DNA of 64,000 nucleotides, taken from the sequence record MK514281.1; one strand, written 5' to 3'. The translations under genes and the position numbers were made by a program. Positions 1,722-53,023 of this stretch are shown piece by piece. The notes under the pieces are model-generated. The model did not search any database. It saw nothing but the letters and a program-made list of their open reading frames with translations, and was not told where the DNA came from. The number at the start of each line of letters is the position of its first letter. Position 1 is the first letter of the stretch.

Positions 1722-2389
1722 CGTTTGCTGAAGCTGAACAGTATATTTACAGTCTCAGTCAAGACGGCGGGGTCTATAAACAAGAGTTCATCTTTGTGTT
1801 TGATCCCGAGTCGTGGGATAAGGTGAACCTGGCGTTGGATATCCTGGACAATAACCGTGGGATCTGGGTGAAGAACGTCGGAGAGTTCAAAACCGCTGGT
1901 ATGACGACCTACGGACCGGTGTCGGGAAGGCTTAAAGGGTATGTTGTTATTGCTGTCCATTTCATGGGCGAACGTAAACTGTTCAATCCAGGGTATCTGC
2001 AGCATGTGTTGAATACCGCGACCCATGAGTTGGTCCACGCTGCTCAGTTCGCTGTTCGGGCGCAGAGCTACCATGATCCATTGATTGCTGTAGAGCCATT
2101 GGCTTACCTGACCGGCTGGCTAATGGAGAAATGGATCTATGCGGTCTGGGAGAAGTTTAAAATCACGATTGCAACAACACCCACCGGCGAGATCTCATAC
2201 AACGTGTTGTTTGACATGCTGTATCGGTTTAATGACCGCCGGCTGGCAGATCGTCTGTGTGAGCTCACCATGACACAGATTCAGAGTGCTTTAGTTAGGG
2301 AGTCGATTAACAGTCTGAATAACGTGGCAGTGGTAAACGATATCGGCTGGTCCTCGACAACGTATCTGGATGGAGTTAACAAGAAATGA
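1718..2389 (+). CDS. Paralog 2 of triplet; putative zinc metallopeptidase-like protein
   Basis: THELVHA plus downstream EPLAYL; ATGA overlap with the upstream gene. Confidence 0.7.
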   Translation: MTFAEAEQYIYSLSQDGGVYKQEFIFVFDPESWDKVNLALDILDNNRGIWVKNVGEFKTAGMTTYGPVSGRLKGYVVIAVHFMGERKLFNPGYLQHVLNTATHELVHAAQFAVRAQSYHDPLIAVEPLAYLTGWLMEKWIYAVWEKFKITIATTPTGEISYNVLFDMLYRFNDRRLADRLCELTMTQIQSALVRESINSLNNVAVVNDIGWSSTTYLDGVNKK

Positions 2390-3012
2390 AGATGCCGGTC
2401 AGTCAGTATGTAGATAAGTTTCTATTAAGGCTGTTCCCTTATCCGCGGCAGTTTATCTTTGTCACCAGTGTTGCGGATTTTGATGCGGTGGTTACCGAAC
2501 TGGCACGTCGGCAGACTGCGGCTGGGATTAGCAATAAATGGCTGAGTCACAGAGGGCATTTCAAAGGGAATGGGATTTGTGCTTCGGGGAATCAGATCTG
2601 TGTATTAGGTGCGCTTTATGATACCGGCACACAGCTCAACCCAGCTAACATCGCCGGGACGATCGGTACCATGCAACATGAAATCCAACACATGTTACTA
2701 CATACCTGTGCGCAGATTGGTTATAACCCGATGCGCGAACACGAACCGTTTACGTATTTAACGAAGTGGGTGTTTGAGTTGTTCCTGGCGTTTATGCGTA
2801 ATTACCACGGCGTGATGATCACCGATGTGCAGCGGCAAGATACTGGTATGCTGAGTCGGTTGCAGAAGGGAGGGGCTTTTGAGTTACTGCACGCCCTGCC
2901 CGTTGAAAATGTTCGAGATTCATTAGCAAGAGAATCTCGTGCATTATTAAACAACGCGGTGGTCGTCAGTCCTATTGGCGCATCCCGTTCCACAACCTAT
3001 TTCGAATTATAA
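2386..3012 (+). CDS. Paralog 3 of triplet; putative zinc metallopeptidase-like protein
   Basis: QHEIQHM plus downstream EPFTYL; ATGA overlap with the upstream gene. Confidence 0.7.
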   Translation: MKMPVSQYVDKFLLRLFPYPRQFIFVTSVADFDAVVTELARRQTAAGISNKWLSHRGHFKGNGICASGNQICVLGALYDTGTQLNPANIAGTIGTMQHEIQHMLLHTCAQIGYNPMREHEPFTYLTKWVFELFLAFMRNYHGVMITDVQRQDTGMLSRLQKGGAFELLHALPVENVRDSLARESRALLNNAVVVSPIGASRSTTYFEL

Positions 3013-3019
3013 TTAACCC

Positions 3020-3045
3020 GGCCAGGGAAACCTGGCCTGTATGTC
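3020..3045 (+). terminator. Hairpin with TGTATGTC tail
   Basis: GGCCAGG-GAAA-CCTGGCC after the triplet. Confidence 0.55.
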
Positions 3046-6034: not shown

Positions 6035-6062
6035 GTCTTGAATAATGAAATTTTTACGCTGT

Positions 6063-6096
6063 AGAAAATCTTAGACCTATATAACGGCACTGATAG
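6063..6096 (+). promoter_or_regulatory. Putative early (virion-RNAP) promoter, 34-bp motif copy 1
   Basis: AGAAAATCTTAGACCTATATAACGGCACTGATAG; near-identical copies at 6669 and 29888, each intergenic and upstream of a gene. Confidence 0.7.
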
Positions 6097-6125
6097 AGTA
6101 ATCTAAATTAACTTACGAGGTTATC

Positions 6126-6656: not shown

Positions 6657-6668
6657 AATATGAGTTGC

Positions 6669-6702
6669 AGAAAATCTCAGACCTATATGACTGGGGTGAT
6701 AA
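6669..6702 (+). promoter_or_regulatory. Putative early promoter, copy 2
   Basis: AGAAAATCTCAGACCTATATGACTGGGGTGATAA. Confidence 0.7.
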
Positions 6703-6759
6703 AGAGTAGTGAATACTCTTAACCCCTAACCCAATTAACCTTAAGTATGGAGTAGTATC

Positions 6760-12078: not shown

Positions 12079-12100
12079 GGGTTTCGGCCCTCCTTTATGA
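12077..12100 (+). terminator. Short hairpin + TTTATGA
   Basis: GAGGG-TTTCGG-CCCTC-CTTTATGA. Confidence 0.5.
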
Positions 12101-12516: not shown

Positions 12517-12552
12517 GCTGGATGCGGTAAACCCGCTCCAGCCCTTATGCCG
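12517..12552 (+). terminator. Hairpin + TTATGCCG
   Basis: GCTGGATGCGG-TAAAC-CCGCTCCAGC then CC-TTATGCCG. Confidence 0.6.
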
Positions 12553-17342: not shown

Positions 17343-17356
17343 TCTATAAATCTGAT

Positions 17357-17402
17357 CGGCATAAGGAGAGGCTACGGCCTCTCCTCTTTCAGAGTCATTT
17401 TT
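17357..17402. terminator. Bidirectional terminator between convergent genes
   Basis: CGGCATA-AGGAGAGGC-TACG-GCCTCTCCT then a T-rich tract. Confidence 0.75.
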
Positions 17403-26161: not shown

Positions 26162-26401
26162 ATGACAGATCCCCACCCCATTCTCGCCGCAGCCATCGGA
26201 GAGCCCCAGGATGACGATTACTGGGACTTTCCGGGCGAGACTGTTGTTGGTCACGGTGATCTGATGTACACCAATATCCATAAACCCCAAGCATTATGGA
26301 ACGGTGTTATTCGGTCACTGCAAAAACGTTTCCTTACCGAACCACCGAACACCCAAAAGGAACAGCATCATGTCGCACAAGAACCGCGCCCCTCAAATTA
26401 A
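26162..26401 (+). CDS. Small hypothetical protein
   Basis: AAGGA SD; 79 aa. Confidence 0.55.
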   Translation: MTDPHPILAAAIGEPQDDDYWDFPGETVVGHGDLMYTNIHKPQALWNGVIRSLQKRFLTEPPNTQKEQHHVAQEPRPSN

Positions 26402-27164
26402 GTTAACCGGCATCAGAGATGGCGAAAATGACGTCTATATCCCCGTGGCTGGATTAGGTATTGCTAATGCCGCTGGAATTACGTACGACCCCACCGCAAT
26501 TAGTAGTGTGCTGGATAAGCTTCGAACTGACAGGCGTTATTTCGATAATTTGCAAAGCCATCCGTATTATCAGCAGAACCTGTTTACGAAATACATTGGT
26601 CTGATACCTGATGACGCTGATTATCGCGGCACACCTGTTCAACGCCATCCGTTCATGCGTGAGATGGCATTGCGGTTTGGCATCGCGCTGGAATCAGTCA
26701 GACTCAACTCCCATCGTCAGACCGGTAAATCGAATTTCATGTACTACCGCATGGTGCAGTTCCACAACCATTATCTGCAGGAAATGACCGATATAAAGGC
26801 AAGCAAGCCGATCCCTATTGACCTTACCCGTTACCTGAAATTAATAACCGGTAAGGATTTCTGGGAGAAGCCTGGCGTGGGTGCATGGGGTAGTGAGTTT
26901 ACCGAACTCTATTTTCATAGACACCAGGCAGGTAGTGGTGGTAAGTCAATGTTCTACAACATGCTGCCGAGAATCAAACTGCATCTGGCTGGTATTCACG
27001 CAACTCTCGGTGGTCGACCGTGGATCTACCACAATGTTGTCAGTCGTGGTCCTGCAGGTTTCTGGCCAGCCACAATAGAGTACGGTATGGCAAGCAACGG
27101 CCCGGCTATGACTGCTCAGCTTAACCGTGAGCGTATGATCAAACCTAAGAAAGGGAGAGCATAA
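26370..27164 (+). CDS. Hypothetical protein with RQTGKS P-loop-like motif
   Basis: AAGGA SD before ATG 26370. Confidence 0.65.
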   Translation: MSHKNRAPQIKLTGIRDGENDVYIPVAGLGIANAAGITYDPTAISSVLDKLRTDRRYFDNLQSHPYYQQNLFTKYIGLIPDDADYRGTPVQRHPFMREMALRFGIALESVRLNSHRQTGKSNFMYYRMVQFHNHYLQEMTDIKASKPIPIDLTRYLKLITGKDFWEKPGVGAWGSEFTELYFHRHQAGSGGKSMFYNMLPRIKLHLAGIHATLGGRPWIYHNVVSRGPAGFWPATIEYGMASNGPAMTAQLNRERMIKPKKGRA

Positions 27165-28066
27165 TGGCTTTAGATCAAGAGTATTACGAAAAGGCATTAG
27201 CGGTGCTCGCTTCCAAAGGTTTCCCTGATAAGGAAGCAGACGAAATTGCCACAACCCTTTCTGTCTATCTGCCTATGCGATTCATCAAGGCTGGTGAATG
27301 GGCGCTGTTGTCACAGGACGTGACACCCGTTAACTCGTTGGCGCTCAAGCACCTGGAGTTACTCGAAAGAATTCCTGAGTTAAAGAAGCCCATGATTCTT
27401 AAGATGCCGACCGATTTCACCTACACAACCTACGGTCAGGAGTATTGTCCAGGTGCCGATGCACCCGTATACAAAACTGGCCCTGATGGTTACACACATC
27501 ACCCGGTAGGCTGGGAAAGTGGAATTACTGGTGTGACGGGTATTTCTGGCGAGGATGGTGTTGAAATTGGCGGTGTTAAACCTGTACGTCATGATTTCAA
27601 ATACGCGTTACCACCCGAGCTCGGTTTACCGAAGGGTGTAACACCGGAACAAGCTAATTATCTGAAGCTTCATGACCTCAGTGATATCGAGGGGATCAAG
27701 CGGGCTTATCCAGATATAGATGAAGAGACTGCTCAAAGTCTGTCGGCTATGCAGCGTAAGATCGACCAACGTTTAGGGCGTGCACATCGTGAAACACGCA
27801 ACTCTGAAATGCTTGGTCAGCGGGCTCAGCAGCAGTATCGTGGTAGCTTGTTTGAGAAGTTCTTGATTGACGAACCGATCGGTGAACCTAAAGGCATGAC
27901 CGTCAAGATCATGACGCACTCCATTCGCAACTTCGGCCACGGGTTACAAATCAGCACACCGTTGTTTGGCCAGAGTCATAAATCTCCAACGGGCCCACAA
28001 ACTATGCCGGGTCTTGAAAAGGGACGTAATGGCCACGGCAAGCGTAAAAAGAAAGGTAAACGATGA
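27164..28066 (+). CDS. Hypothetical protein, Lys/Arg-rich C-terminus
   Basis: TAATG coupling; ends GHGKRKKKGKR. Confidence 0.75.
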   Translation: MALDQEYYEKALAVLASKGFPDKEADEIATTLSVYLPMRFIKAGEWALLSQDVTPVNSLALKHLELLERIPELKKPMILKMPTDFTYTTYGQEYCPGADAPVYKTGPDGYTHHPVGWESGITGVTGISGEDGVEIGGVKPVRHDFKYALPPELGLPKGVTPEQANYLKLHDLSDIEGIKRAYPDIDEETAQSLSAMQRKIDQRLGRAHRETRNSEMLGQRAQQQYRGSLFEKFLIDEPIGEPKGMTVKIMTHSIRNFGHGLQISTPLFGQSHKSPTGPQTMPGLEKGRNGHGKRKKKGKR

Positions 28067-28845
28067 TTAACGGTAACACTGAGGGGTCATGGGAATCCCT
28101 CCTTAAATGGCATTGGTTTGAAGAGCGGTCAGCCCGACGGGAGCCAATGCATTTCGTGGTTGTCGATTACGATACGGGTAGTGAAGCCAAGGCGTTTCAG
28201 CAGCTGACTGAACTGGCAGAGAAATTGGACTATGTCTCTGTTGAACGTATTGCGGCGGCTGACTTCACCCCTGCTCGTACCAGAGCGCTGAACGAGCGTG
28301 AAGGCGGGTGGCATTATTGTCATCTGATGGGGGAGTGTCGGTATGGCCGAGGTGGGATCATCATTGGTGAGGGTGGTGGTTGGACAGGCGCGCACGGTGG
28401 TGCCGGTGATGTCGGGATGGCTGCAACCCCTAATGATGGATCGATACTATACCAAACCGATTGCAATGATCCTGTGGTTGGCAGGCGTAAGTTTAAGACG
28501 GTGCGGGATGTCATGGAAAAGGCCAGTCCTTACGATTGGCCGGTAGAAATCTGTGTAGTGGGTAACCGGCGTGACCCAGAAGTCGTGGCATTATCCCAAG
28601 CTGTGTTCAAATCGGTGGGTAGTCGCAATATCAAAGTCACTGCCAAAACCCATCAGGAAATGATGTTTAACCAGCGCACACACCAGGTGGTTAATATCAC
28701 GCCGGCGAAGTATCAAGCGGAGTTTGAAGCGGCTTACCAGGAAGCTTACATCAACGCTAACACGGTCTCGACCATGCCGGTACGCCTTGGCCCACGTGGA
28801 CCGTTGCATTCGGTCTTGGCAACCCAACGCAAGAAACACTTTTAA
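28063..28845 (+). CDS. Hypothetical protein with internal Gly-rich loop
   Basis: ATGA overlap; 260 aa. Confidence 0.7.
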   Translation: MINGNTEGSWESLLKWHWFEERSARREPMHFVVVDYDTGSEAKAFQQLTELAEKLDYVSVERIAAADFTPARTRALNEREGGWHYCHLMGECRYGRGGIIIGEGGGWTGAHGGAGDVGMAATPNDGSILYQTDCNDPVVGRRKFKTVRDVMEKASPYDWPVEICVVGNRRDPEVVALSQAVFKSVGSRNIKVTAKTHQEMMFNQRTHQVVNITPAKYQAEFEAAYQEAYINANTVSTMPVRLGPRGPLHSVLATQRKKHF

Positions 28846-29389: not shown

Positions 29390-29407
29390 TACCCTGGCTT
29401 TATGCCG
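29378..29407 (+). terminator. Hairpin + TTATGCCG
   Basis: AGCCAGGG-GTAATA-CCCTGGCT-TTATGCCG. Confidence 0.7.
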
Positions 29408-29887: not shown

Positions 29888-29921
29888 AGAAAAACTCAGA
29901 CCTATATCACGCCCGTGATAG
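29888..29921 (+). promoter_or_regulatory. Putative early promoter, copy 3
   Basis: AGAAAAACTCAGACCTATATCACGCCCGTGATAG. Confidence 0.7.
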
Positions 29922-29958
29922 ACCCCTCAACCCCCATTAATCTTAAGTGAGTTCAATC

Positions 29959-32201: not shown

Positions 32202-32250
32202 CGGCATATAGGCCCTCCATTACGGAGGGCCTTTTATGACATCTTTTTTT
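32202..32250. terminator. Bidirectional terminator
   Basis: CGGCATAT-AGGCCCTCC-ATTAC-GGAGGGCCT-TTTATGAC then a T tract; genes converge here. Confidence 0.8.
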
Positions 32251-35327: not shown

Positions 35328-36239
35328 ATGAGTGATTTTACTGACTTAACGAAATTGAAGACCGAATTACCACAAAACATCCAAAAGATTGATGAGCAGG
35401 ATGATGTGGGTGACTTCAGCGATCTTAACGACTACCTCATGACCATCATTCCGGATGAACGGCGTGAGCGCTTGATCGCGATCTGTCAAAACTTAAGTAC
35501 CCTGCAGTATCATCAAGTCCAGCCCGATGTGGATCGGTTACTGATGATGGCTAACGACGGTGAAGCGCCTTCGGTGCTCGATGACTTGACCCGGTTGTTA
35601 TTTGAACACGCTTATGACTTAACGAAAAACATGGGCTTTAACTGGGCTGATGAGATTGAGTTTGATAAGCTGTTCCTGCTCGGTGATGTAATCGAAGGCG
35701 CCATGTTGATTGATGGCATGGAAGACTACGGCGACCTCTCAGCGATCCTGGATGGTGATGACTCAGTTGAAGAGAAGGTGGTGGATATCTGGGGCCTGGT
35801 GCTCGACAAAGACATGCACCATCTCTTTGAACAGATCCAGTCCATTGAACCGGCAGTGATCAGCGGGATCAAACAAGTCACGACCCGCCCGTATGCCGAA
35901 GACGATTATGCGGATGTCCAGCGTCCACTTGAGTTCGTGGTTGAGCGGTTGGTGAAAGTTCGTGAGATGATGAAGACCGATGGCATTGCTTACCAGCATG
36001 TGGCCAAGGGTGGAGCATTAGGCGTTGAGCTCGATTCACTGATTACGCTCTACACCCCTGAGCTGAATGCCGTGACCGATCCGATCGAACTGACCGACCT
36101 GCTGGTTGCCTTTACCCTGATCAGCAACACCCCAGATGGTTTGGTGAAATCCACCGCATCCCGGCTGGCAGAAAAATGGATTGATGATATCGAAGTCATC
36201 AATGTGGTAGGTAAACATATCGACAGGTATCCCGTGTGA
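35328..36239 (+). CDS. Acidic protein coupled to virion RNAP beta' (phiKZ gp79 position)
   Basis: AAGG SD; GTGA overlap with the RNAP gene. Confidence 0.7.
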   Translation: MSDFTDLTKLKTELPQNIQKIDEQDDVGDFSDLNDYLMTIIPDERRERLIAICQNLSTLQYHQVQPDVDRLLMMANDGEAPSVLDDLTRLLFEHAYDLTKNMGFNWADEIEFDKLFLLGDVIEGAMLIDGMEDYGDLSAILDGDDSVEEKVVDIWGLVLDKDMHHLFEQIQSIEPAVISGIKQVTTRPYAEDDYADVQRPLEFVVERLVKVREMMKTDGIAYQHVAKGGALGVELDSLITLYTPELNAVTDPIELTDLLVAFTLISNTPDGLVKSTASRLAEKWIDDIEVINVVGKHIDRYPV

Positions 36240-37546
36240 ATATTCGCGACTATTTAATCATGGCCTTTCGGGCAGGGGCTTACAAGCAACGCCAGTGGGT
36301 GTTGAGTGTCATGAGTATCACCCAGACCCCGGATGGTAAATCCGTAGCAGACAGTATGATCCCGTATCAGGCACACCGCATCAACATCGGCGCGACCCTC
36401 GATTGGGCTTACTGGGACGACTTCAACAAAACCTTTGTGCCGATTGAGGGAGTGGATGTTAACTTCCCGTTGTTTCGACCCGAGGATCAATACACACTAC
36501 AACCTGGGGATTTTGCCAATGTCACTGAAGAAGTTACTACTACTTTCGGCCGTATTCTGGCTAACCATTATTATTTTATCGATGTGGTCGGTGAACGTGT
36601 CCCATTTCAGAACGTAGAATTCAACCGTGGGATGTTGGAGAAGATCTACAAGGCCCGGGTATTAGAAGATGCCCAGGACTTGCGGCGCTCTGATCCGTTC
36701 TACCTGACCGTCGATGAATTCAAACGCTCCGTGGATAATGGCTTTGCCTTGGGTGGGTTGTCGAAACTCTGTGTACCGACTGCTTGTCCGGAAACCATGT
36801 ATCCGCCGAAGTTCATCATCGAGATGCGTGACCGTCTGTTTGAAGAGCACAAGGATGAGCTCAACAACCCGGTGGTCATGGGGCGTATTCAGGATGAGCT
36901 GTTAAAGCATTATCGTGAGTTCCTGATGTCCACCCCGTCAGCCAAGTTCTTTGTGATCAAGAAGACCATCGACCAGGCCTTCAACAACATGTTCCTGACC
37001 GGCGGTATTGCCGGGGCTTTTGGCGGTAACACGGTTATTACCAACTCGCTGTACGAAGGCTGGAACCTGAAGAACTTCCCGGCGTTAGTGAATGGCTCTA
37101 TCGAAGCTTCCTTTGACCGCGGTGCGGCTACAGCCGACGGTGGTGAGAAAGTGAAGATGTTGATCCGTGCCACGCAGAACATCCGTATCACCGATGATGA
37201 TTGCGGGACCCAGCTCGGGGTCCCGTGGGTGATTGAAGATGCCGGCAAGGCACGCTTCATTAACTCTTACATACTGGATAAAGGTGTGACGATTCTGTTA
37301 ACCCCGGAGAACATTGATAAGTTCGTCGGTAAGCCGGTCATGACCCGATCACCCAGCTTCTGTAAGAAATCCCATGGCGACTCCTGTAAGTTCTGCGTCG
37401 GGGCACATAACGCCACCAACCCACGCGGGATGTCTTCTGGCACCTCGAAGATCGGTTCTACCCTGATGTTGCTCAGTATGAAGGCAATGCACAAGGGGTC
37501 AAAAATAGACTTAATTGAATATAATCTCGATGAAGTCTTCAATTGA
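36236..37546 (+). CDS. rpoC: Virion RNAP beta' subunit, C-terminal half (phiKZ gp80-like)
   Basis: Bridge helix DRGAATADGG...DDDCGT, RSPSFC..SCKFCVG Zn site, trigger-loop-like SMKAMH. Confidence 0.85.
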   Translation: MNIRDYLIMAFRAGAYKQRQWVLSVMSITQTPDGKSVADSMIPYQAHRINIGATLDWAYWDDFNKTFVPIEGVDVNFPLFRPEDQYTLQPGDFANVTEEVTTTFGRILANHYYFIDVVGERVPFQNVEFNRGMLEKIYKARVLEDAQDLRRSDPFYLTVDEFKRSVDNGFALGGLSKLCVPTACPETMYPPKFIIEMRDRLFEEHKDELNNPVVMGRIQDELLKHYREFLMSTPSAKFFVIKKTIDQAFNNMFLTGGIAGAFGGNTVITNSLYEGWNLKNFPALVNGSIEASFDRGAATADGGEKVKMLIRATQNIRITDDDCGTQLGVPWVIEDAGKARFINSYILDKGVTILLTPENIDKFVGKPVMTRSPSFCKKSHGDSCKFCVGAHNATNPRGMSSGTSKIGSTLMLLSMKAMHKGSKIDLIEYNLDEVFN

Positions 37547-37600: not shown

Positions 37601-38317
37601 ATGTATGGTTTATTAATCCTCGCCTTGCCTCTGTCACCGTACGTCCACATGAGTGCGATGACTGAGGAACAATTCCAGAAACGCCTCCCGCAATTCATCA
37701 AAGACCTGGAAGCCGACATCTTCCCCAACGTCTGTTTCCAGGGTGCCTTTAACGTCAGCAACACCCGCACGGTCACTCAGCTGTTCATTCCGTGTAACGG
37801 CTTGGTGTCAGCACGGGAACTGGCGTATGAACAGATCCGTAATATTCTTGCTAACCCAGAGAAAGAAGTCCAGCACGTCACCAACATCGGTGATTGGTTA
37901 GGTCGTCCGGGTAAGGTGATGTTTGATAATGCGGATGGGTCTGTGGATGAGGTCGTTGTGACCGACATGTACAAATATCTGGTACACGAGAGAAGAGAGC
38001 GTTCTGTCTTTCGGTTCAGTCCGGTTGATCTCAGTATCACCGATACCGAACCATTACCAACTCACCTCTACCCGCGTGATCATTTCTACGACCAGGTCTA
38101 CATCGACAAAGACGGTGAGCGTGCTTTCCTGTCTTACGGGTCGTGCGGTGAGGAAGGCTGTGCCATAGAGCCGGGCGAAGAGAAGCCCGTGCAAGTGTAC
38201 GGCGTTACCTACTCGTCACTGGATGAAGCGGCCCGATGCTATAACCTGCCTGAGCAGTACGTGAAAGAACGCGTTGAATCTGACAGCCTTGAATGGCTGG
38301 AGTGGTCATATTTGTAA
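37601..38317 (+). CDS. Hypothetical protein with C-terminal NUMOD1-like HTH; paralog of 41863..42645
   Basis: TNIGDWL, VTDMYKYL; PVQVYGVTYSSLDEAARCY...W. Confidence 0.65.
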   Translation: MYGLLILALPLSPYVHMSAMTEEQFQKRLPQFIKDLEADIFPNVCFQGAFNVSNTRTVTQLFIPCNGLVSARELAYEQIRNILANPEKEVQHVTNIGDWLGRPGKVMFDNADGSVDEVVVTDMYKYLVHERRERSVFRFSPVDLSITDTEPLPTHLYPRDHFYDQVYIDKDGERAFLSYGSCGEEGCAIEPGEEKPVQVYGVTYSSLDEAARCYNLPEQYVKERVESDSLEWLEWSYL

Positions 38318-38445: not shown

Positions 38446-38643
38446 ATGACCACAAACCCGCAGTTTATTTTCGTGGCTCAGAATTCTGATGCTACACACA
38501 GCGTAGAGAAACTGGAAGTAGGACGCGATACCGATACCCAGAAGAACCTCACGGAACTTCGTAAAGGTTTGCCGTTCGACTTCTCGTTTATCATGTCTGA
38601 AGAGGCGATCTATCAACTTCGACAGGCAGGGCACATCAACTAA
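38446..38643 (+). CDS. Small hypothetical protein
   Basis: 65-aa ORF in the same orientation as its neighbours. Confidence 0.5.
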   Translation: MTTNPQFIFVAQNSDATHSVEKLEVGRDTDTQKNLTELRKGLPFDFSFIMSEEAIYQLRQAGHIN

Positions 38644-38658
38644 ACTGCTGAGGTAGTC

Positions 38659-39111
38659 ATGACGAACAAATCGGAGATCTCACACGGTGGTGGTGATCAG
38701 CCTATGGAAAAAGAGCAAAGCAACTTATCCGTACTGGTGAACTACTCCACAGGTGTGATGGAAGGTGACCGTTTTAATTACTCGGTTGCATTGGCGCTGT
38801 TGAAAGACGGCATCAAAGTGAAACGCGAAGACTGGAAGAACGCTTTCCTGGTATTCGTCCCGGGTAGTCAGAATGTTGAACTGCCAAAAGGGTCGCCGTA
38901 TGAAGTCGCACTCCACGGTAAGAAGTCCGTTGCCAATATTCGTCCGCACATCGATCTGTACACGGAGTACGGTGAATTCGAAGTCGGTTGGACCGCCAAC
39001 CAGGAAGACACCAACGCCGATGACTGGATGATTGTCTTAGACAAGAACACCAATCAAGACGACAGTGCCGACGAAGAGAAAGAGTCTTCACAAGACGACT
39101 CGAAGTCATAA
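38659..39111 (+). CDS. tad2: DUF2829/Tad2-like nucleotide-signal sponge (anti-defence)
   Basis: ALALLKDGIKVKREDW.NAFL..V.GS...PHIDLYT..G....GWTANQEDTNADDW matches the DUF2829 pattern. Confidence 0.75.
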   Translation: MTNKSEISHGGGDQPMEKEQSNLSVLVNYSTGVMEGDRFNYSVALALLKDGIKVKREDWKNAFLVFVPGSQNVELPKGSPYEVALHGKKSVANIRPHIDLYTEYGEFEVGWTANQEDTNADDWMIVLDKNTNQDDSADEEKESSQDDSKS

Positions 39112-39116
39112 ACTCC

Positions 39117-39145
39117 AGGAGAGCTTCGGCTCTCCTTTTATGCCC
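39117..39145 (+). terminator. Hairpin + TTTATGCCC
   Basis: AGGAGAGC-TTCG-GCTCTCCT-TTTATGCCC. Confidence 0.7.
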
Positions 39146-39160
39146 ATTAAGGAACATGTC

Positions 39161-39520
39161 ATGAGTGAAAAGAAAGCGTTCGAAGTGGTATTGGATAGCC
39201 GTCATGAACCGTACGAGGCTTACCAGTTATTAGTGGCGCGTATCAATACGTTATTACGCACCGGTCAAGGCTACCATGAAGTGAAACTCACGAAGTGGCA
39301 GCTTTACGATAACGGTCTTCTTATCAAAGGAGATGATGATGTGCATATCTCCTTGTTGCGTCATTTCTATTACGACGAACAACGCAATACGTTTGGTGGT
39401 GGCTTCATGGCCTTTGAGATCCTGGAAGATTTGGGTCGGTACTACAAAGTGCCCGATATCACAGAAGGGATGGGCGAGAACGTTGGCCTCGTCTTCACGG
39501 TCACGGTAACCACACCATAA
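39161..39520 (+). CDS. Tandem paralog A (x-T-[AK]-W...GD family)
   Basis: VKLTKW...KGDDDVHIS; AAGGA SD. Confidence 0.7.
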   Translation: MSEKKAFEVVLDSRHEPYEAYQLLVARINTLLRTGQGYHEVKLTKWQLYDNGLLIKGDDDVHISLLRHFYYDEQRNTFGGGFMAFEILEDLGRYYKVPDITEGMGENVGLVFTVTVTTP

Positions 39521-39526
39521 GAGGTT

Positions 39527-39895
39527 GTGATGAAACCACTCTTCGCCATGAAGTTTGATACCCGGGATGCGGGATTAGGGGATCAACTCGATCTCTTGCA
39601 ATCACGGGTGAAGGCTTACTCTAAACACGGCACCATGATCAAAGATGTGGCGGTGACTGCCTGGGTGGTCTGTTCGGATAACATGCCAGTTGCCGGTGAT
39701 GACCCTGCTCATGTCAGCATTATCCACCGTTACCGTTACGACATCGAACAGCAGTGTGTGGTCGGTGGGGTCAGTGCCATGGATGCTCTGCGTGAGATCT
39801 GGTCGGCGTATGGTCCTGACTCTACCCTCCCACCGTTCAGCCGGATACCCGGTGCTGTCGATATGCAATTTACCTTAACTGTGTTCACTATTTAA
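39527..39895 (+). CDS. Tandem paralog B
   Basis: VAVTAW...AGDDPAHVS; collinear with paralog A. Confidence 0.7.
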   Translation: MMKPLFAMKFDTRDAGLGDQLDLLQSRVKAYSKHGTMIKDVAVTAWVVCSDNMPVAGDDPAHVSIIHRYRYDIEQQCVVGGVSAMDALREIWSAYGPDSTLPPFSRIPGAVDMQFTLTVFTI

Positions 39896-39908
39896 AGGAG
39901 ATACCCTC

Positions 39909-40298
39909 ATGGGAGTTTCTGCTGCTGCTCGTCGTTCTAAAGAAGGGGTGTTTACCCGTAGCATTGAAGTGCGTCCAGACCACTGGAAACGGGATATCAC
40001 TGATTTAGGACTGGATGTCCATAACCTGGTGTTGTGTAAACAGGAGATCGTGTCAGTGACCGTCACGGCTTGGAGGGCGTATGACGAGTGCGGTGTACTG
40101 CGTGGTAGTGCCAAAGAGTTGAAGTTAGACATTACGGAATGGTTCCTCGGTGACAAAGGCCCGGTCATTAATGATGCGATCAAACCTCTCACGTTTGCCT
40201 TCATCATTAATCAACAACGCAGCCAACGCACGCCCTGGGTAAAAGATGTCCGCTTAGGGCTTAACCTGTCCATTGTCTACAAGAGGATTCAGCAATAA
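39909..40298 (+). CDS. Tandem paralog C
   Basis: VTVTAWRAYDECGVLRG; AAGGAG SD. Confidence 0.65.
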   Translation: MGVSAAARRSKEGVFTRSIEVRPDHWKRDITDLGLDVHNLVLCKQEIVSVTVTAWRAYDECGVLRGSAKELKLDITEWFLGDKGPVINDAIKPLTFAFIINQQRSQRTPWVKDVRLGLNLSIVYKRIQQ

Positions 40299-40642
40299 TG
40301 GAAATTGTCCACCAACTCGATCTTAGCCACGGCTGGGAACCCTTCAACCGCCTGAAAGCCGCCTTTGCCAAGAAACCCCCGGAGGCGATCCACATCACTG
40401 CCTGGGTTGCTCATGGTTATAAAGGAAACCTCATCGGTGATGAGCAAGTGGTGAAAGGGTCGTGCCAGGAGTGTCGGATTGATGTGACCCACATCTTCTT
40501 CCCCAGTCGGCCTGAGATCTTGATTGGTTTGTCGAGCTTCATTAACACCATTAATCGTGACGGGCCGGTGAAGATCCCGGCCTGGACCGGATCGATTACT
40601 CTTTGTCTTGAATTAGCGATAAGTTATACGGATAGAATTTAA
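40298..40642 (+). CDS. Tandem paralog D
   Basis: IHITAWVAHGYKGNLIGD; TAATG coupling. Confidence 0.65.
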   Translation: MEIVHQLDLSHGWEPFNRLKAAFAKKPPEAIHITAWVAHGYKGNLIGDEQVVKGSCQECRIDVTHIFFPSRPEILIGLSSFINTINRDGPVKIPAWTGSITLCLELAISYTDRI

Positions 40643-40749
40643 TCGGCATATATTCTGTCTCGTTAGCGTAAGCTCGCTAAAAACCCTTTTAAAGTTTTGT
40701 ATAACAAACTATCAACTTTGTAGAAAGAAACAAATAGGAAATTAATCTC

Positions 40750-41460
40750 ATGTTGCATGAAAACTTTGAAGCCTTAGTGGCGAACATCGCCAACCAAATC
40801 AATCAGCTGGAACCCGAGGATCTGCCGTCACTGATCCTGACCAAGAGCGGGGTCTACATCAACGACAAGCGCCACGATCGCACTCGTCTACTGCTGAACC
40901 TGTTTACCCCCCAGCCCGGGCACACGCACGACGTGACCTTCGATCAAGAGCTGCAGGATGCCTTCGCTCACAACAACCTGGAGTTTATCAAAGTCGGTGA
41001 AGGGATCGCCTACGGACTACTGCGTACCAGTATCGTTAACAACGAACCCGCGGTGTTCTGGATTCACGCCGATGTCTCCGATGATGCATCATTACTGAAG
41101 CAAGCCTGGGATATCATCACCGACCTGAAGAAGAATGCGGGTTACCCCCAGGCGTTTAACATTGACGTGCTCGACGTAAGCTGGCATGCGTTAAGCTGGG
41201 CACAACTGCTGGGGACTTTGCTTGACCGCACTGACCCGACACGCCGGTTTCGTTTGGCAACTAACGCTGACTACGATTTTGTGTTATCCCAGAAAGCCAT
41301 CACGTACTACCAGGAGACGTTGAGTAAACGTCCGATGGCACCGGTTGCTTACCTCGATGACACTAACTTGTTTAACGGTGGCGACTTTAACGACAGTGAT
41401 CGCAACTGGGCAATCGCCCCGAACGACAGCACCCGCCCTATCGTGAAGGTGTATGTTTAA
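40750..41460 (+). CDS. Hypothetical protein
   Basis: AGGA SD; AT-rich upstream region. Confidence 0.7.
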   Translation: MLHENFEALVANIANQINQLEPEDLPSLILTKSGVYINDKRHDRTRLLLNLFTPQPGHTHDVTFDQELQDAFAHNNLEFIKVGEGIAYGLLRTSIVNNEPAVFWIHADVSDDASLLKQAWDIITDLKKNAGYPQAFNIDVLDVSWHALSWAQLLGTLLDRTDPTRRFRLATNADYDFVLSQKAITYYQETLSKRPMAPVAYLDDTNLFNGGDFNDSDRNWAIAPNDSTRPIVKVYV

Positions 41461-41862: not shown

Positions 41863-42645
41863 ATGGCTATGACGTTCGAAAAAGAAGGGGACACGTTGCA
41901 CATTGTGCGACTGAGAACCAAAGGCTGGTACCACATGACGGTAACCAGCGATCCTGATGCGAGTATGGATATCGTTAACACGAACTTACGTCAGGGCACT
42001 TTTACTGATCCACTTTTACAACACCAGTACGACATCTGTAAAAAAGAGATGGGACAAGATCCCAATCCAAATGACATCGTTTTCCACCAGTTCGTGACCA
42101 CGCCAGACCAGACCGGGTATCAGTCTGGCCACTGGATGATTCGTGATCACATTCGCCACGGCTATTCACTGAAGTGCCTGACTAACATCGGTGACTGGCT
42201 TTCGACCGCAGCCTATCTTTATATCCCAGACCCTGATGATAAAGAGGGCGGTGAGAGAAAATACAAAGTAACTGACTTAGGTAAGTATCTCGACAAGGAA
42301 GAGTTGTTGGGTCACTCCGACCACCTGCCGATGTATTTCTTGCCTGATGAGGAACCGGGTGACAGCTATGATGAGTTGATTGAAACCCATCGTCTCCCGC
42401 AACCTGACAAAGGTTACTCTTGTGTGGCCATCAAGAACGGTATGTCGTTTAGTTTGCTGACGTACAACAACTCCAAGCGGGTGCTTTCAGAAGAGGAAGA
42501 ACTGCAAACCACAACCGTCCCAGTCAGGGCAGATGGTTTGCTGTACAGCTCCGTCTTAGAGTTGGCTATGGCTAAGAACGCCCCAGTCTGGTTTGTCTTG
42601 GAGATGCTAACCTCCGAAACCGACCCAAACTGGCATTTCGTCTAA
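41863..42645 (+). CDS. Hypothetical protein with C-terminal NUMOD1-like HTH; paralog of 37601..38317
   Basis: TNIGDWL, VTDLGKYL; PVRADGLLYSSVLELA...WHFV. Confidence 0.65.
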   Translation: MAMTFEKEGDTLHIVRLRTKGWYHMTVTSDPDASMDIVNTNLRQGTFTDPLLQHQYDICKKEMGQDPNPNDIVFHQFVTTPDQTGYQSGHWMIRDHIRHGYSLKCLTNIGDWLSTAAYLYIPDPDDKEGGERKYKVTDLGKYLDKEELLGHSDHLPMYFLPDEEPGDSYDELIETHRLPQPDKGYSCVAIKNGMSFSLLTYNNSKRVLSEEEELQTTTVPVRADGLLYSSVLELAMAKNAPVWFVLEMLTSETDPNWHFV

Positions 42646-42663
42646 CCGAGATTGGCTGTGGGG

Positions 42664-42672
42664 AATCCTATG
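42664..42672 (+). promoter_or_regulatory. Putative late promoter (TATG-type)
   Basis: AATCCTATG, identical to 48362; phiKZ late promoters have a TATG core. Confidence 0.45.
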
Positions 42673-42733
42673 CAATTGCAAAGTGTAGAGAGAACCACGG
42701 CCAATCGTAAGCTGTATCATAAGGAGAGAGATT

Positions 42734-44314
42734 GTGAGTGAAGCTAACCAGAACATCGTAGAAAGCTACGACGACCTGCCGAAGAACGCGCAGAAAGGTG
42801 ATCGCTATACAGTGCGTGAAGACGCGATCGTTTATGAACTCCAGGAAGATGGTTCTTGGAAAGACGTAGACATCAACGAACAGGTTGATCAGGAAAACGA
42901 AGAGCAGGCGCAGACCGAAGATGGTCAGCAGTCTGACACTGGCGCAACTGATCAGCCAGCCTCTGATGAAGAGAGCGATGCTGATTCGTCTGAAACGGCA
43001 GCTACCGATGAAGAAGACCAGGTAGATGACAACGGCGATGACAAGCAGACTCCGGCTGAAGAGAAGCAGGAGGAAGCAGCGCAGGCGGTTGATGAAACCC
43101 AACCACGTGATGACCCTTACGTACGAGGAGCGAACAGCGATGCCAATCCGGCACAACCTGAAGATGCGAATCAAACGCAAGATCAGACTGACGAAGCAGG
43201 ACAAACTCCTGATTCTTCTGACGATACCAACACGCAGCAGGAAAGCACTGATGGCGTTGCGACGCAGGATGCGAAAGAGCAGGCTAACATCCCGGAAGGG
43301 GTAGATCCTGAAGAAGCGCAACCTGACAACCAACCGCTGGCAGTAGCGCCAGTTGAGCAACCCCCTGTCCAGCACGAAGCGGTCGCGGTTGATCCTAACG
43401 CCGACCAGCCATCACCTGAAGCGCGTCCAGACAGCAAGATCGAAGAAGCGGCTGAACTGAACGCACAGAAAGAAGATGCGGTTCGTGATGAGATCGCTGA
43501 AGCCGGTGCTGATGCACAAGCTGCGACCTCTGCTGAGCAGACTGACGCTGGCAAAGCCAAAGAAGACGCACAGGCTGAAGGCCAGTTGCCGAACGATGGT
43601 GCTGCTGATGATGTCGCCGCTGGTAAACCACGTAATGACCAGACCTACACCGAAGATCAGAAAGCAGCGAACACGCCAGCTCCTGAAATCGTGCAGGCTC
43701 AGGAAAACCATACGTCAGAGCCCGATCCGGTAGTCAGCCAGGAAGAGACCCATGTGCAGAACGCCACGGACCCTGACCAGCCGACTATTATCCCGCAGGA
43801 AGCGAAGTCTGAATCACTGGCGCATCAAGCGGCTGATCCAACGCAGGAAACTGTGTTTGTTAAGCAGGATGAAAACCTGGACCCGGAAGTGCGCGTGCTG
43901 CAACAGCGCATTGAAGAGTACATCGGCAACATGGGTGTGAACGGTAAGCACGATCGCCGTGACGGTCCGAAGTATCAGGCTCGCCTGTACAAAGACTTGC
44001 ACTCCATCATGGCGCTGGAGCCAGTGAAGTTCAAGCAAGTGATGGACTACCTGCTGAACCGTGTGTATGAAGAACGTGCCGGTGCTTTCTCTGACACCTA
44101 TACGCGCCGTTACTTCGATCAGCTGTCACCGATGCACATGCAGACCGATCGCGTGCGTGAGTTTGACAACATCCTCTCGCTGGTAACTACTGTGGGTCAT
44201 TCCAAAAACCGCAGTCGTGCCCTGCAGCAGGTTGATCTGCAACGCGCCCTGAAGAATATTCAGGATGCCGGTAAGCAGCAGCGTATGGCAGCGTACTTTG
44301 ATGCTCTGCGTTAA
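42734..44314 (+). CDS. Probable virion protein: small N-terminal domain, long acidic disordered linker, helical C-terminal domain
   Basis: AAGGAG SD before GTG; D/E/Q/A/P-rich middle region. Confidence 0.7.
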   Translation: MSEANQNIVESYDDLPKNAQKGDRYTVREDAIVYELQEDGSWKDVDINEQVDQENEEQAQTEDGQQSDTGATDQPASDEESDADSSETAATDEEDQVDDNGDDKQTPAEEKQEEAAQAVDETQPRDDPYVRGANSDANPAQPEDANQTQDQTDEAGQTPDSSDDTNTQQESTDGVATQDAKEQANIPEGVDPEEAQPDNQPLAVAPVEQPPVQHEAVAVDPNADQPSPEARPDSKIEEAAELNAQKEDAVRDEIAEAGADAQAATSAEQTDAGKAKEDAQAEGQLPNDGAADDVAAGKPRNDQTYTEDQKAANTPAPEIVQAQENHTSEPDPVVSQEETHVQNATDPDQPTIIPQEAKSESLAHQAADPTQETVFVKQDENLDPEVRVLQQRIEEYIGNMGVNGKHDRRDGPKYQARLYKDLHSIMALEPVKFKQVMDYLLNRVYEERAGAFSDTYTRRYFDQLSPMHMQTDRVREFDNILSLVTTVGHSKNRSRALQQVDLQRALKNIQDAGKQQRMAAYFDALR

Positions 44315-44327
44315 TTGATCATTTGAT

Positions 44328-44379
44328 CAGCATAAGGAGAGGCCTCGCGCCTCTCCTGTTTATGCCGTCTTTTTTTTTT
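44328..44379. terminator. Bidirectional terminator
   Basis: CAGCATAA-GGAGAGGC-CTCGC-GCCTCTCC-TGT-TTATGCCG then T10. Confidence 0.85.
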
Positions 44380-44878
44380 ACACTAAAATGCCGTTAAAAG
44401 CCACCGGGTCATTAGCCAGGAATGGGTTGTACCGAACCACGGACTCTAACGTGTAATCGTAATAGATGAAATCCAAGCATTGCTCGCCCTGGTAGGTAGT
44501 CCATGACCTTGACAAGAAGCCATTACGATCTAACGAAATATACGCCGGACGGCTTGCTAACGGCGTGAGTTTCATTAATACCTGAGGGTGGTTGTTGAGG
44601 TTATCGGTAAAGACTGCAAGATTCGGGTGCGCGTGTCGCGCGACAGTACTTAATCTGGAGTCATAGGTGAACCACTCTTTATACGGCGTGCCGTACATGA
44701 TCGTGGTACGTGTTACTGCGAAGCTGACATACTTGTCTGGATATAACCGCACCTGGTCGTCACCCAGTGCATTGGTGTACTTTGTAGGGTTCGCTGTAAG
44801 CCATGCCTGGAATTGCGCATAGGTCATCTTGGTACCTATCTGCGGCTGCGGCTTACCACCCATTAACATCTCTAACAT
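44378..44878 (-). CDS. Putative tail-fibre-associated protein, paralog 1
   Basis: MLEMLMGG leader; collinear with the adjacent ORF. Confidence 0.65.
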   Translation of the reverse strand: MLEMLMGGKPQPQIGTKMTYAQFQAWLTANPTKYTNALGDDQVRLYPDKYVSFAVTRTTIMYGTPYKEWFTYDSRLSTVARHAHPNLAVFTDNLNNHPQVLMKLTPLASRPAYISLDRNGFLSRSWTTYQGEQCLDFIYYDYTLESVVRYNPFLANDPVAFNGILV

Positions 44879-44890
44879 GGTAACTCCTGA

Positions 44891-45400
44891 TTAGATCAAC
44901 ACCCCGTTAAACGGTACCGGTGTGCCACCATTTAACGGAGTCCACCGCATCACAACACCCTGGGTATTGTCGTAGTAAATAAAGTCAAGCAAAGTACGAC
45001 CGTTAAATGATCCGTAGGAATTACTGGTGAAGCCGTTGCGGTTGACACCCGGATAGGAACCTCTACTGACATAAGGCCCAAGTTTCATTAAACAAAATTG
45101 TTTATTCGCCAACATGTAATCAAACATCGTTTGTGCCGGGCATGCATGTCGTGCGATCCTGGCCCAGGTTGAATCGTGAGTATAATAATTTAAATAGGGC
45201 GATCCCCACATGTTACCGCCATCGGCCGTCATGGAGATTCTGGCATAGCCGTTCGTAAACGTGGTGGACGACGGTGTACCTGAACTGGACACCGCAGTGA
45301 CCGCACTGTACTTAGCGGTATTGGTATTTAACCAGTTAACAAAATCAGCATAGCTCATCTTCACAGTTTTCTTGCCAGCGTACATTAATAACTCGAGCAT
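44891..45400 (-). CDS. Putative tail-fibre-associated protein, paralog 2
   Basis: GAGGT SD before MLELLMYAG; shares ARHA, LMKL, RNGF, LDFIYYD and FNG.L. Confidence 0.65.
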   Translation of the reverse strand: MLELLMYAGKKTVKMSYADFVNWLNTNTAKYSAVTAVSSSGTPSSTTFTNGYARISMTADGGNMWGSPYLNYYTHDSTWARIARHACPAQTMFDYMLANKQFCLMKLGPYVSRGSYPGVNRNGFTSNSYGSFNGRTLLDFIYYDNTQGVVMRWTPLNGGTPVPFNGVLI

Positions 45401-45472
45401 AACTACCACCTCAAAATAAAATCCCGTTAGCAAGGGTTCTGGTTATCTAATACATGACTTATAGGATTTAGC

Positions 45473-46520: not shown

Positions 46521-46577
46521 GCATCATCCTTCTAGAATGAGTACCTTGACGACCTACTCGCGTCATAGCATTCCAGC

Positions 46578-46621
46578 CGGCATAAGGGAGTGGATACCCT
46601 GACCGTAGCCAAGGTATCCAC
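46578..46621 (-). terminator. Minus-strand hairpin + TTATGCCG
   Basis: CGGCATAA then GTGGATACC...GGTATCCAC; the polymerase gene ends at 46630. Confidence 0.6.
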
Positions 46622-51712: not shown

Positions 51713-52969
51713 ATGGAATCCACATTACTTCAAACGATCAATGAAACCACGGAGTTGTGTGACTCTTTGATTTCGTTGTCACAACGTCTTGAGATGTTGG
51801 GTCCCATTGCTGCTGAATCCGTTAACTTCGCAAAGATCCATGAATCGATTAACCTGAAGGTGGCGAAGATTGCCGCTTCGATGGAGTCGATTGAAGCTAA
51901 CGGCATCAACCAGGAGGCGGTGTTAGAAATCAATACTGCCATGCCTGGTATCATTCCCAACACCATCCCTCTTAATGGATACACCAAAGCCCGCAGTCAG
52001 ATGAATGTGGGGTTTGCCTTAGAGTCGTTGGAGTCAGGTAAAGCAGCAATGATCTCCGGTTCAGTAACAGGGATCGTGGCCGTGATCGTCAAACTGTTTC
52101 GTTGGGTTGTCATGACCATCAAGCAGTATGTCAAATCACGCCGTGATGCGAACCGTCTCGGTGTCTCTGTGACACAAGCACTGCAACGTGCGGGAACGAT
52201 CAACGAATACCTGTTAGAACAGTTGGCAAAAACCCCAGAAGCCAAAGCCGCCCGTCCGGGCTTTGAATGGTTGGTATCGATCTGGCGTCCGCAGGCTGGG
52301 ATCTTTAAGTTCAATGAAGATGCACTGGTGCAGTGGTGGCCAGAACTCGTCAATGAACTGGAGTACGAATACAACCAGATCAGCAAGGCGTTTGACATGC
52401 TGCGTAGCGGTGGGTCGTTTGTCCCGAACATTGCGAAAGCGCATCAGTCCCCCTCCATGAAGCGTTTCTTTGAAGCCTTACCGCAAGGGACGGATCGTCA
52501 AGGGAACATCGTTGAGGTAGAGCTGGCGAAGAAGCAGTTTCAGGAGAACCCACAGCGTGCGTTGTTCCAGCTGGCTGAGCGTCTGCGCTACATGATCATG
52601 CGTGAGCCTAAATCAAAAGGTACTGACTTTGGGCAAGAGCTGATCTCAGTAGGTCGCAGTATTGAAGCCTACACCAATGTGGATCGTCTGGTGTTTGATC
52701 AGCTGAATACCTACGACACCAACAATCGATTAGGGAAACTGGAAGAGGCGTTTGGTGCGTTGTATAAGCAAGTCCAAGCCACACGCTACACTGCAGACAA
52801 AGCCCTGGTTGATGAGTTCGTGGGTTACCTGAACCGTTATTCAGAAAAGCTTAACTGTTTCGTGCAACTGATCACCATTGTGAGTTACCTGGATAGCTGT
52901 AGTTTCCAGATCCTTGACAATGTCTCCAAAGCTACCATGAAGTACGTTGATATTGCTGCCAGTAATTAA
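51713..52969 (+). CDS. Head/inner-body protein, proteolytically processed family
   Basis: GYTKARS...ALE|SLE|S; AAGGA SD. Confidence 0.7.
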   Translation: MESTLLQTINETTELCDSLISLSQRLEMLGPIAAESVNFAKIHESINLKVAKIAASMESIEANGINQEAVLEINTAMPGIIPNTIPLNGYTKARSQMNVGFALESLESGKAAMISGSVTGIVAVIVKLFRWVVMTIKQYVKSRRDANRLGVSVTQALQRAGTINEYLLEQLAKTPEAKAARPGFEWLVSIWRPQAGIFKFNEDALVQWWPELVNELEYEYNQISKAFDMLRSGGSFVPNIAKAHQSPSMKRFFEALPQGTDRQGNIVEVELAKKQFQENPQRALFQLAERLRYMIMREPKSKGTDFGQELISVGRSIEAYTNVDRLVFDQLNTYDTNNRLGKLEEAFGALYKQVQATRYTADKALVDEFVGYLNRYSEKLNCFVQLITIVSYLDSCSFQILDNVSKATMKYVDIAASN

Positions 52970-52971
52970 AT

Positions 52972-53023
52972 CGGCATAAAGGCCTGGCCTTCCTTGCGGA
53001 GGGCCAGAGCCTTGCTTATGCCG
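52972..53023. terminator. Bidirectional terminator
   Basis: CGGCATAA...hairpin...TTATGCCG between convergent genes. Confidence 0.75.

Follow-up and report, generated by a model that had tools for sequence, protein, structure and literature searches.

Four diverged tandem paralogues beside a Tad2 homologue in Erwinia phage Rebecca: relatedness, predicted fold and possible roles

Four small genes, here called A to D, lie in tandem at positions 39161–40642 of a 64,000-nucleotide (nt) stretch of sequence record MK514281.1, hereafter the window. The window is identical (100%) to part of Erwinia phage Rebecca (MK514281.1, 273.7 kb), a nucleus-forming jumbo phage of the genus Agricanvirus, and window positions 38600–40800 correspond to record positions 224600–226800. 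We found that A–D are anciently diverged tandem paralogues of one superfamily, comprising two old pairs, A/B and C/D. The four genes are as follows:

39161–39520, + strand: A (gp276), an open reading frame (ORF) of 119 amino acids (aa) with a ribosome-binding site, 13.7 kDa, isoelectric point (pI) 5.1
39530–39895, + strand: B (gp277), 121 aa from the ATG at 39530 (122 aa from the GTG at 39527), pI 5.4
39909–40298, + strand: C (gp278), 129 aa, basic, pI 9.5
40298–40642, + strand: D (gp279), 114 aa, pI 6.5

The spacing between A and B, B and C, and C and D is 9, 13 and -1 nt, respectively, the start of D overlapping the stop codon of C, and a Shine-Dalgarno-like purine run precedes each start by 5–11 nt. 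The predicted products have masses of 12.8–14.7 kDa. In GenBank, Rebecca gp276 starts at a GTG at 39065 (151 aa), which makes it overlap the upstream Tad2 gene by 47 nt and cross an intergenic hairpin. Because of this overlap and hairpin, and because the orthologues in RAY, Ea35-70, MadMel, Deimos-Minion and AH06 are all annotated from the ATG equivalent to 39161, the GenBank start is probably wrong and 39161 probably the correct one. Sixteen further Agricanvirus records matched window positions 38600–40800, 15 of them over the full 2.2 kb at 93–99.6% identity, while the AH06 record covered 44% of this stretch at 82% identity. The reading frames of A–D are all intact across these 17 phage records. 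Moreover, the ratio of nonsynonymous to synonymous substitution rates (dN/dS) was 0.04–0.22 in all computable pairwise comparisons (A, 0.10; B, 0.15 for Rebecca versus Ea35-70/MadMel; C, 0.22), indicating that all four genes are maintained by selection. A–D are almost certainly real genes and real paralogues.

Relatedness and predicted fold of A–D

An earlier note on this DNA, made from the letters alone, had proposed that the four genes are tandem, highly diverged paralogues and that A and B align over their whole length. Both proposals were confirmed. A and B aligned end to end with 27% identity (blastp E 1e-11), and C and D were linked by blastp at default settings (E 4e-6) and by HHalign (95%); the C–D match was missing from a blastp run with composition correction off and word size 2, and the default run and the profiles were relied on. 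Between the pairs, identity is just 12–15%, and pairwise blastp of the A/B members of the window against the C/D members gave no significant match. However, a profile of 25 A/B-type sequences matched a profile of seven C/D-type sequences at an HHalign probability of 89.5% (E 2e-6, 90 columns), with a score of 39.1 against 11.8 +/- 2.6 (maximum 24.4) in 200 column-shuffled C/D alignments (z ~10). When all six-frame ORFs of at least 60 aa in the window were searched with hidden Markov models (HMMs), the best non-self matches of the C/D model were A and then B, and the best non-self match of the A/B model was C. A direct link was also present among relatives, between an A-type protein of phage pEa_SNUABM_37 and a C-type protein of the related phage locus L004 (E 4e-5). 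Taken as a superfamily test, profile similarity extended over most of the length of A–D, while unrelated small neighbours used as controls scored below 1%. The Thr-x-Trp...Gly motif that the earlier note had seen in the four genes of 114–129 aa held across a 26-sequence family alignment, in which every sequence has the Trp (26/26), 25/26 have the Thr two positions earlier and 21/26 the Gly of the hairpin. No DNA-level repeats were found between the copies, and the duplications are therefore old.

It could be argued that A/B and C/D resemble each other through a motif that arose by chance, or that some of the copies are decaying, non-functional duplicates, as the 12–15% identity and the non-significant blastp comparison within the window might suggest. 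This explanation is extremely unlikely and is already contradicted by the profile, HMM and structure evidence: the profile–profile score lies about 10 standard deviations above the shuffled controls, the HMM matches are reciprocal and specific in the window, the pEa_SNUABM_37 and L004 proteins match directly, the independent structure models described below agree, and all four frames are intact in the 17 records with dN/dS ≤0.22.

The AlphaFold2 model of A had a predicted local distance difference test score (pLDDT) of 91 and a predicted template modelling score (pTM) of 0.83, and that of D a pLDDT of 76 and a pTM of 0.70. The elements of D follow the order strand-helix-strand-strand-helix-strand, and A has the same order plus a hairpin inserted after strand 3 and before helix 2. 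In both models the last element is a predicted beta-strand, in agreement with the terminal hydrophobic strand noticed before. Differing predicted folds would have spoken against the proposed family, but the model of A matched models of the B, C and D orthologues in BFVD, a library of independently predicted viral structures: the B orthologue of RAY at a template modelling score (TM) of 0.86, the C orthologue of RAY at TM 0.67 (E 2.8e-4) and the D orthologue of Simmy50 at TM 0.58, each with a Foldseek probability of 1.00. On these models, A–D are predicted to share one fold.

We further compared the models with 350,542 PDB chains by Foldseek (significance bar, E <0.001 and TM >0.5), and neither A nor D gave any match at E ≤0.001. 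The best matches, at E 0.31 for A and 0.037 for D with TM ≤0.37, were insignificant, and the solved folds of anti-defence sponges and inhibitors in the PDB (Tad1, Tad2, Acb2 and anti-CRISPRs) had no significant match to either model. Y-family DNA polymerase chains and Cas7 recurred among the low-scoring targets, which, as far as the models go, fits a generic two-layer alpha+beta sandwich and nothing more; the Cas7 chains in these lists are the partners in anti-CRISPR complexes, not the inhibitors. Ferredoxin-like and RRM-like sandwiches resemble the A and D models in the order strand-helix-strand-strand-helix-strand and in size, but differ by the extra hairpin of A and by the lack of a significant structural match (E 0.037–0.31, TM ≤0.37). 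A ferredoxin-like fold is defined by this element order together with a four-stranded antiparallel sheet in the order 4-1-3-2; what the models show is the element order.

On the Kyte-Doolittle scale, no 19-residue window of A–D exceeds a hydrophobicity of 1.15 and none looks like a membrane segment; the sequences point to small (13–15 kDa), soluble, single-domain alpha+beta proteins. In the family alignment, only the Thr-x-Trp pair on one strand and the hairpin Gly are general to all clades, no catalytic-type residue set is common to all of them, and the conserved polar residues and the charge differ clade by clade (pI 5.1, 5.4, 9.5 and 6.5). Since only Thr-x-Trp and Gly are shared across clades, a binding scaffold is most likely, rather than an enzyme.

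The Tad2 homologue and other neighbours

The array is flanked on the same strand by the following features:

36236–37546, + strand: gp272, a virion RNA polymerase (vRNAP) piece, orthologue of vRNAP beta' subunit 2, 436 aa
37601–38317, + strand: gp273
38446–38643, + strand: gp274, 65 aa
38659–39111, + strand: gp275, Tad2 homologue (Thoeris anti-defence 2 / DUF2829), 150 aa, with an acidic C-terminal tail
39117–39142, + strand: terminator-like hairpin in the 49-nt spacer between Tad2 and A, with a 7–8 base-pair GC-rich stem and a TTCG loop, followed by TTTTATG
40750–41460, + strand: gp280

Phage RAY, of the same species as Rebecca, is a chimallin-encoding nucleus-forming phage whose gp270, named vRNAP beta' subunit 2, localises with capsids (PMC10299810); the orthologue of gp270 in Rebecca is the 436-aa gene at 36236–37546. 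Tagged versions of 24 RAY proteins, the orthologues of A–D not being among them, have been localised in infected cells (PMC10299810). The upstream neighbour of the array had been named tad2, and this was borne out: gp275 matched Pfam PF11195 (E 4.5e-14, 53.2 bits, cut-off 25) and, by sequence, the solved Tad2 chains 8WJD (SptTad2), 9EIB (ModTad2) and 8V3E (Tad2) at E 1e-5 to 3e-5, which identifies it at the sequence level as a true Tad2 homologue. Its orthologue in RAY, gp273, was detected by mass spectrometry of crude lysate (PMC6690015).

A–D themselves are not members of Tad2/DUF2829, as they had no PF11195 match and no PDB sequence match better than E 1.5. They resemble Tad2 in being small soluble phage proteins encoded in the same direction within the same variable island, and would be similar to it in principle if they act by stoichiometric binding. 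They differ from it in that there is no sequence relation (no Pfam match at E ≤1, no PDB sequence match), in that the 50 top PDB matches by Foldseek include no Tad2 chain for either the A or the D model, and in that their family is present in related phages without Tad2.

The hairpin at 39117–39142 is kept in AH06 with one G-U change, where the flanking proteins are just 58–87% identical. Elements of this class, a strong GC-rich hairpin with (T)TTATG(C/A)C immediately after it, recur intergenically on both strands with ~13 strong examples in the window, such as 3020–3045, 12079–12100, 12518–12550, 17355–17394 (- strand), 29390–29405, 32213–32240, 39117–39142, 44329–44365 (both strands), 46540–46590 (- strand) and 52950–53020 (both strands). 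Because the class is also present between convergent genes (~32213–32240, 44329–44365 and 52950–53020), where nothing lies downstream, the hairpin with (T)TTATG looks like a terminator signal of the phage. Late promoters of phiKZ carry a TATG motif, and we considered the hairpin with TTATG before A as a phage promoter; the terminator reading was preferred, because the same element stands between convergent genes. A–D may be reached by read-through from upstream or through an unrecognised phage promoter. A sigma-70 promoter scan gave three sites against 5.9 in shuffled sequence and is uninformative for a phage with its own polymerases. Elsewhere in the window, an intergenic repeat of ~35 nt (AGAAAAnCTyAGACCTATATnAC ... 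GTGATAGA) lies upstream of three + strand genes, at ~6050–6100, 6665–6705 and 29888–29925, and may be a phage promoter or operator. Rfam gave nothing in the window.

Distribution and variability of the family

A–D had no Pfam match at E ≤1 and no NCBIfam or PADLOC match, and the family profile matched nothing among PDB sequences better than E 1.5; neither by sequence nor by fold did we find a match to a known anti-defence, defence or ligand-binding family. In PHROGs, A and B both fell into phrog_6658 (E 2.2e-59 and 5.5e-66), C into phrog_11644 (E 1.4e-88) and D into phrog_11536 (E 2.9e-80), with weak cross-matches of C and D (0.05–0.06), and all three families are listed there as 'unknown function'. 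To call the array an undescribed counter-defence system, as the earlier note did, is therefore overstated, since PHROGs already catalogues its members. However, PHROGs keeps them as three unrelated sets, whereas here they are joined to each other and to three small proteins of phages of the pEa_SNUABM_37/SA002 type. What is new is that the three PHROGs and these three proteins form one superfamily with seven paralogue lineages in two phage groups.

An exhaustive HMMER search of 1.84 billion cluster representatives returned six true representatives, besides three spurious long repetitive proteins. A word-indexed search of 5.8 billion proteins gave 22 A/B-type and 4 C/D-type clusters, with a further 27 clusters for the three small pEa_SNUABM_37/SA002-type proteins, and none of the 22, 4 and 27 clusters bears a name other than 'hypothetical protein' (some are unnamed). 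Searching with the A/B alignment also yielded two IMG/VR loci. Judged from these sequence searches, the family is confined to nucleus-forming jumbo phages that infect Enterobacterales, in two related groups, one Agricanvirus-like and the other pEa_SNUABM_37/SA002-like; other chimalliviruses lacked it in the search of 1.84 billion representatives. The family was met on jumbo-phage contigs in every case, always downstream of the 436-aa gene of the virion polymerase by a few genes, and every carrier genome has two to four copies. The gene orders are as follows, L numbers denoting loci of related phages:

Agricanviruses including AH06: Tad2, A, B, C, D
L014 and L022: Tad2, A, B, C, then an unrelated 143-aa gene
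L004: RelA/SpoT-type HD hydrolase, a 65-aa gene, B, C, then unrelated 165- and 144-aa genes; without Tad2, A and D
pEa_SNUABM_37/48, L006, L008, L015 and L018: one A-type copy and, further on, three small proteins (103–105, 116–124 and 107–110 aa)
Salmonella phage SA002: the same three small proteins as in the pEa_SNUABM_37 type

In the pEa_SNUABM_37 type, the three small proteins follow a gene of 263–268 aa and usually the HD hydrolase. They are mutually related and aligned with the C/D profile over 98 columns (probability 95%), with six unrelated neighbours as controls at <1%. Proteins of 103, 108, 115 and 156 aa in BFVD that match the A model at TM 0.50–0.73 probably come from SA002 and include a fourth, A-like one. 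A is the most widely conserved member, with orthologues at 40–45% identity in pEa_SNUABM_37, L006 and L008. The unrelated proteins of 143–144 and 165 aa in the fourth slot were examined as hidden family members and rejected (HHalign 0.1–0.2%, HMM E 0.21). The 143–144-aa protein in the slot of D (L014, 5949–6380; L022, 6174–6605; L004, 6263–6697) carries faint zinc-ribbon hints. The same island of related phages encodes a hydrolase-only RelA/SpoT-type HD protein (L003, 6276–6902; L004, 4080–4700; L006, 6249–6884; L008, 6702–7325), which sits between or before family members, matches Pfam PF13328 and the PDB entries of Lmo0812 and MESH1, and is a candidate alarmone hydrolase.

The locus differs even between close phages. 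Rebecca and Ea35-70 have a median protein identity of 99.3% over 62 genes, but their B proteins are 73.6% identical, the fourth most divergent of the 62, with a synonymous divergence (dS) of ~1.2, which is saturated, while the flanks of B are ≥96% identical between Rebecca and Ea35-70/MadMel; the pattern is one of replacement by a different allele, not local acceleration. Between L014 and Rebecca, A (87%) and gp280 (91%) are well conserved, B and C are 40% and 47% identical, and D is absent. D is likewise missing from L022 and L004, and in all three its slot is taken by the unrelated 143–144-aa gene. Against AH06, A, B, C and D of Rebecca are 58%, 68%, 39% and 72% identical, respectively, where the 62 window genes span 0–93%, and among the four only C falls in the lowest sixth. 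The comparisons show a mosaic, variable accessory island in which B, C and the fourth slot are exchangeable.

Homing-endonuclease-like genes are also present in this island. The two genes that flank the array, gp273 (37601–38317) and gp282 (41869–42645), are mutually paralogous (phrog_6749; blastp E 6e-6); the C-terminus of gp273 weakly matches the DNA-binding domain of I-TevI as well as a model for homing endonucleases, and a 450-aa relative in L008 has a weak GIY-YIG match. Other mosaic patches between Rebecca and Ea35-70 are gp257–259 (26370–28845; 44–61% protein identity) and gp284–285 (44378–45433; 74–86%). The latter two genes are tandem paralogues of each other (38% identity), and three further tandem diverged paralogues of 208–223 aa, gp226–228, lie at 1074–3012 (blastp E 4e-14 to 5e-7).

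Possible roles of the array

The family formed by A–D is new and uncharacterised, and its type is familiar: accessory paralogues, restricted to one lineage, in the variable island of jumbo phages. The reading we favour is that they would be binding scaffolds, not enzymes, and that the copies would act separately, each on a different partner in the infected cell. Such separate action appears most likely because polar residues and charge are clade-specific and because close phages have swapped or replaced single slots. The most likely partners would be host factors that limit infection, and the array would then supply accessory counter-defence or host-takeover inhibitors acting by stoichiometric binding, beside Tad2 in the Agricanviruses or beside the RelA/SpoT-type hydrolase in their relatives. 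We put an accessory host-interaction role by binding at about an even chance; the narrower proposal of independent host-factor binders, possibly with a counter-defence function, is tentative, and counter-defence specifically, for which the basis is genomic context only, is slightly more doubtful still. The earlier note had described a diversified anti-defence or host-binding family with copy-specific targets. The idea of different partners is consistent with the clade-specific residues, the charge and the exchangeable slots, but the counter-defence part found no counterpart among anti-defence families. The boldest reading of the array, an immune-evasion family of new fold diversified by tandem duplication, in which each copy sequesters a different immune signal or blocks a different effector as a multi-specificity cassette beside Tad2, and the B, C and fourth slots are in an arms race with Erwinia/Pantoea defences, seems improbable.

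Several observations weigh against the favoured reading, and above all against its counter-defence part. The link of A–D to defence is circumstantial, being guilt by association. In the co-location search suggested in the earlier note, Tad2 adjoined the family in the Agricanviruses, L014 and L022, but in phages of the pEa_SNUABM_37 type and in L004 the family occupies the same locus and Tad2 is absent. Tad2 is therefore not a constant neighbour of the family, which would seem to be older at this locus than Tad2, and in Rebecca a conserved terminator-like hairpin parts Tad2 from A. Adjacency to tad2 is thus weaker evidence than it sounds. When the argument from hypervariability was tested, C and the allele swap of B stood out, while the divergence of A, B and D from AH06 (58–72%) was ordinary for the hypothetical genes of the window. 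Tandem diverged paralogues are common in Rebecca, with gp226–228 and gp284–285 in the same window, and the array as a whole is not exceptional among the hypothetical genes of this genome. Across both phage groups the A-type copy keeps its place and much of its sequence (40–45%) and looks more like a lineage-core gene than an arms-race gene. Finally, no carrier genome has fewer than two members, and translation of D is coupled to that of C, which would fit cooperating subunits as well. The comparison with clustered counter-defence loci such as anti-CRISPR loci and anti-defence islands, drawn by concept only, cuts both ways. They share with A–D small lineage-restricted proteins of unknown fold, a known anti-defence gene nearby, and variation in presence and alleles between close relatives, but their members are usually unrelated, whereas A–D are paralogues, and no marker such as an Aca-type regulator was found at A–D.

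Cooperating subunits are the core of one rival explanation, according to which A–D form a single hetero-oligomer with a lineage-specific housekeeping role, for example one linked to the virion RNA polymerase or the phage nucleus, and duplication gave rise to distinct subunits instead of distinct targets. Every carrier has two to four members (A–D in Agricanviruses, A–C in L014 and L022, B and C in L004, one A-type and three distant copies in the pEa_SNUABM_37 type, and three distant copies with probably an A-like fourth, from BFVD, in SA002), the genes are closely spaced with the stop of C overlapping the start of D, their position after the gene for vRNAP beta' subunit 2 is constant, and every paralogue lineage is old and under purifying selection. 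However, single slots are swapped independently, B being 40–74% identical where A is 87–97%, which strains the idea of co-evolved interfaces; some relatives do without D, and L004 also lacks A; synteny with the gene for the polymerase may reflect the overall collinearity of related genomes; and absence from other chimalliviruses places the family outside their core. We consider this explanation unlikely. Much the same gene position has been weighed for a virion role, in which A–D would be minor or ejected components of the particle, co-packaged with the virion RNA polymerase and carried into the cell. Jumbo phages are known to have head proteins in paralogous families, and an SA002 gene nearby is annotated 'putative virion structural protein'. 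In addition, A–D lie downstream of, and co-directional with, the vRNAP beta' subunit 2 gene, and in RAY the product of this gene associates with capsids (PMC10299810). On the other side, A–D are far smaller than the known inner-body paralogues, and slot replacement and loss are unusual for structural parts. Their orthologues, RAY gp274–277 and those of Deimos-Minion, are not among the 44 detected proteins in the main text, including the detection table, of a shallow survey of crude lysates (PMC6690015), which argues mildly against A–D being abundant structural proteins. A virion role is very unlikely.

The predicted fold leads to a further rival, in which A–D are small nucleic-acid binders with a ferredoxin/RRM-like domain that regulate phage or host RNA or DNA through a sheet aromatic contacting bases. 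The element order of D, and of A with its inserted hairpin, agrees with this, as do the invariant Trp and near-invariant Thr on one strand, the basic character of C (pI 9.5) and the recurrence of nucleic-acid-binding ferredoxin-like modules (Y-family polymerases and Cas7) among the insignificant Foldseek matches. Nevertheless, every PDB match is non-significant (E ≥0.037, TM ≤0.37), and A, B and D are acidic to neutral; such a role is improbable.

Nucleus-forming jumbo phages shield their DNA from DNA-targeting defences, and signalling and abortive-infection systems remain as their weak points. The Tad2 gene shows that this lineage invests in countering such defences. A paralogous family with a confidently predicted fold, no solved match and exchangeable slots belongs on a short list for host-interaction or counter-defence proteins, in phages that are considered for fire-blight biocontrol. 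A–D are thus a candidate list for follow-up and not a discovered system, with the anti-defence reading a reasonable but tentative lead. Should they prove to be ordinary lineage-specific factors, three PHROGs of unknown function and three further proteins would still have been merged and one gene start corrected.

Outside the array, gp283 (42734–44314) encodes 526 aa, of which the first ~300 residues are extremely acidic and of low complexity (rich in D, E, Q, A and P), and explains the AT-skew peak of 0.234 at 42001–44000.

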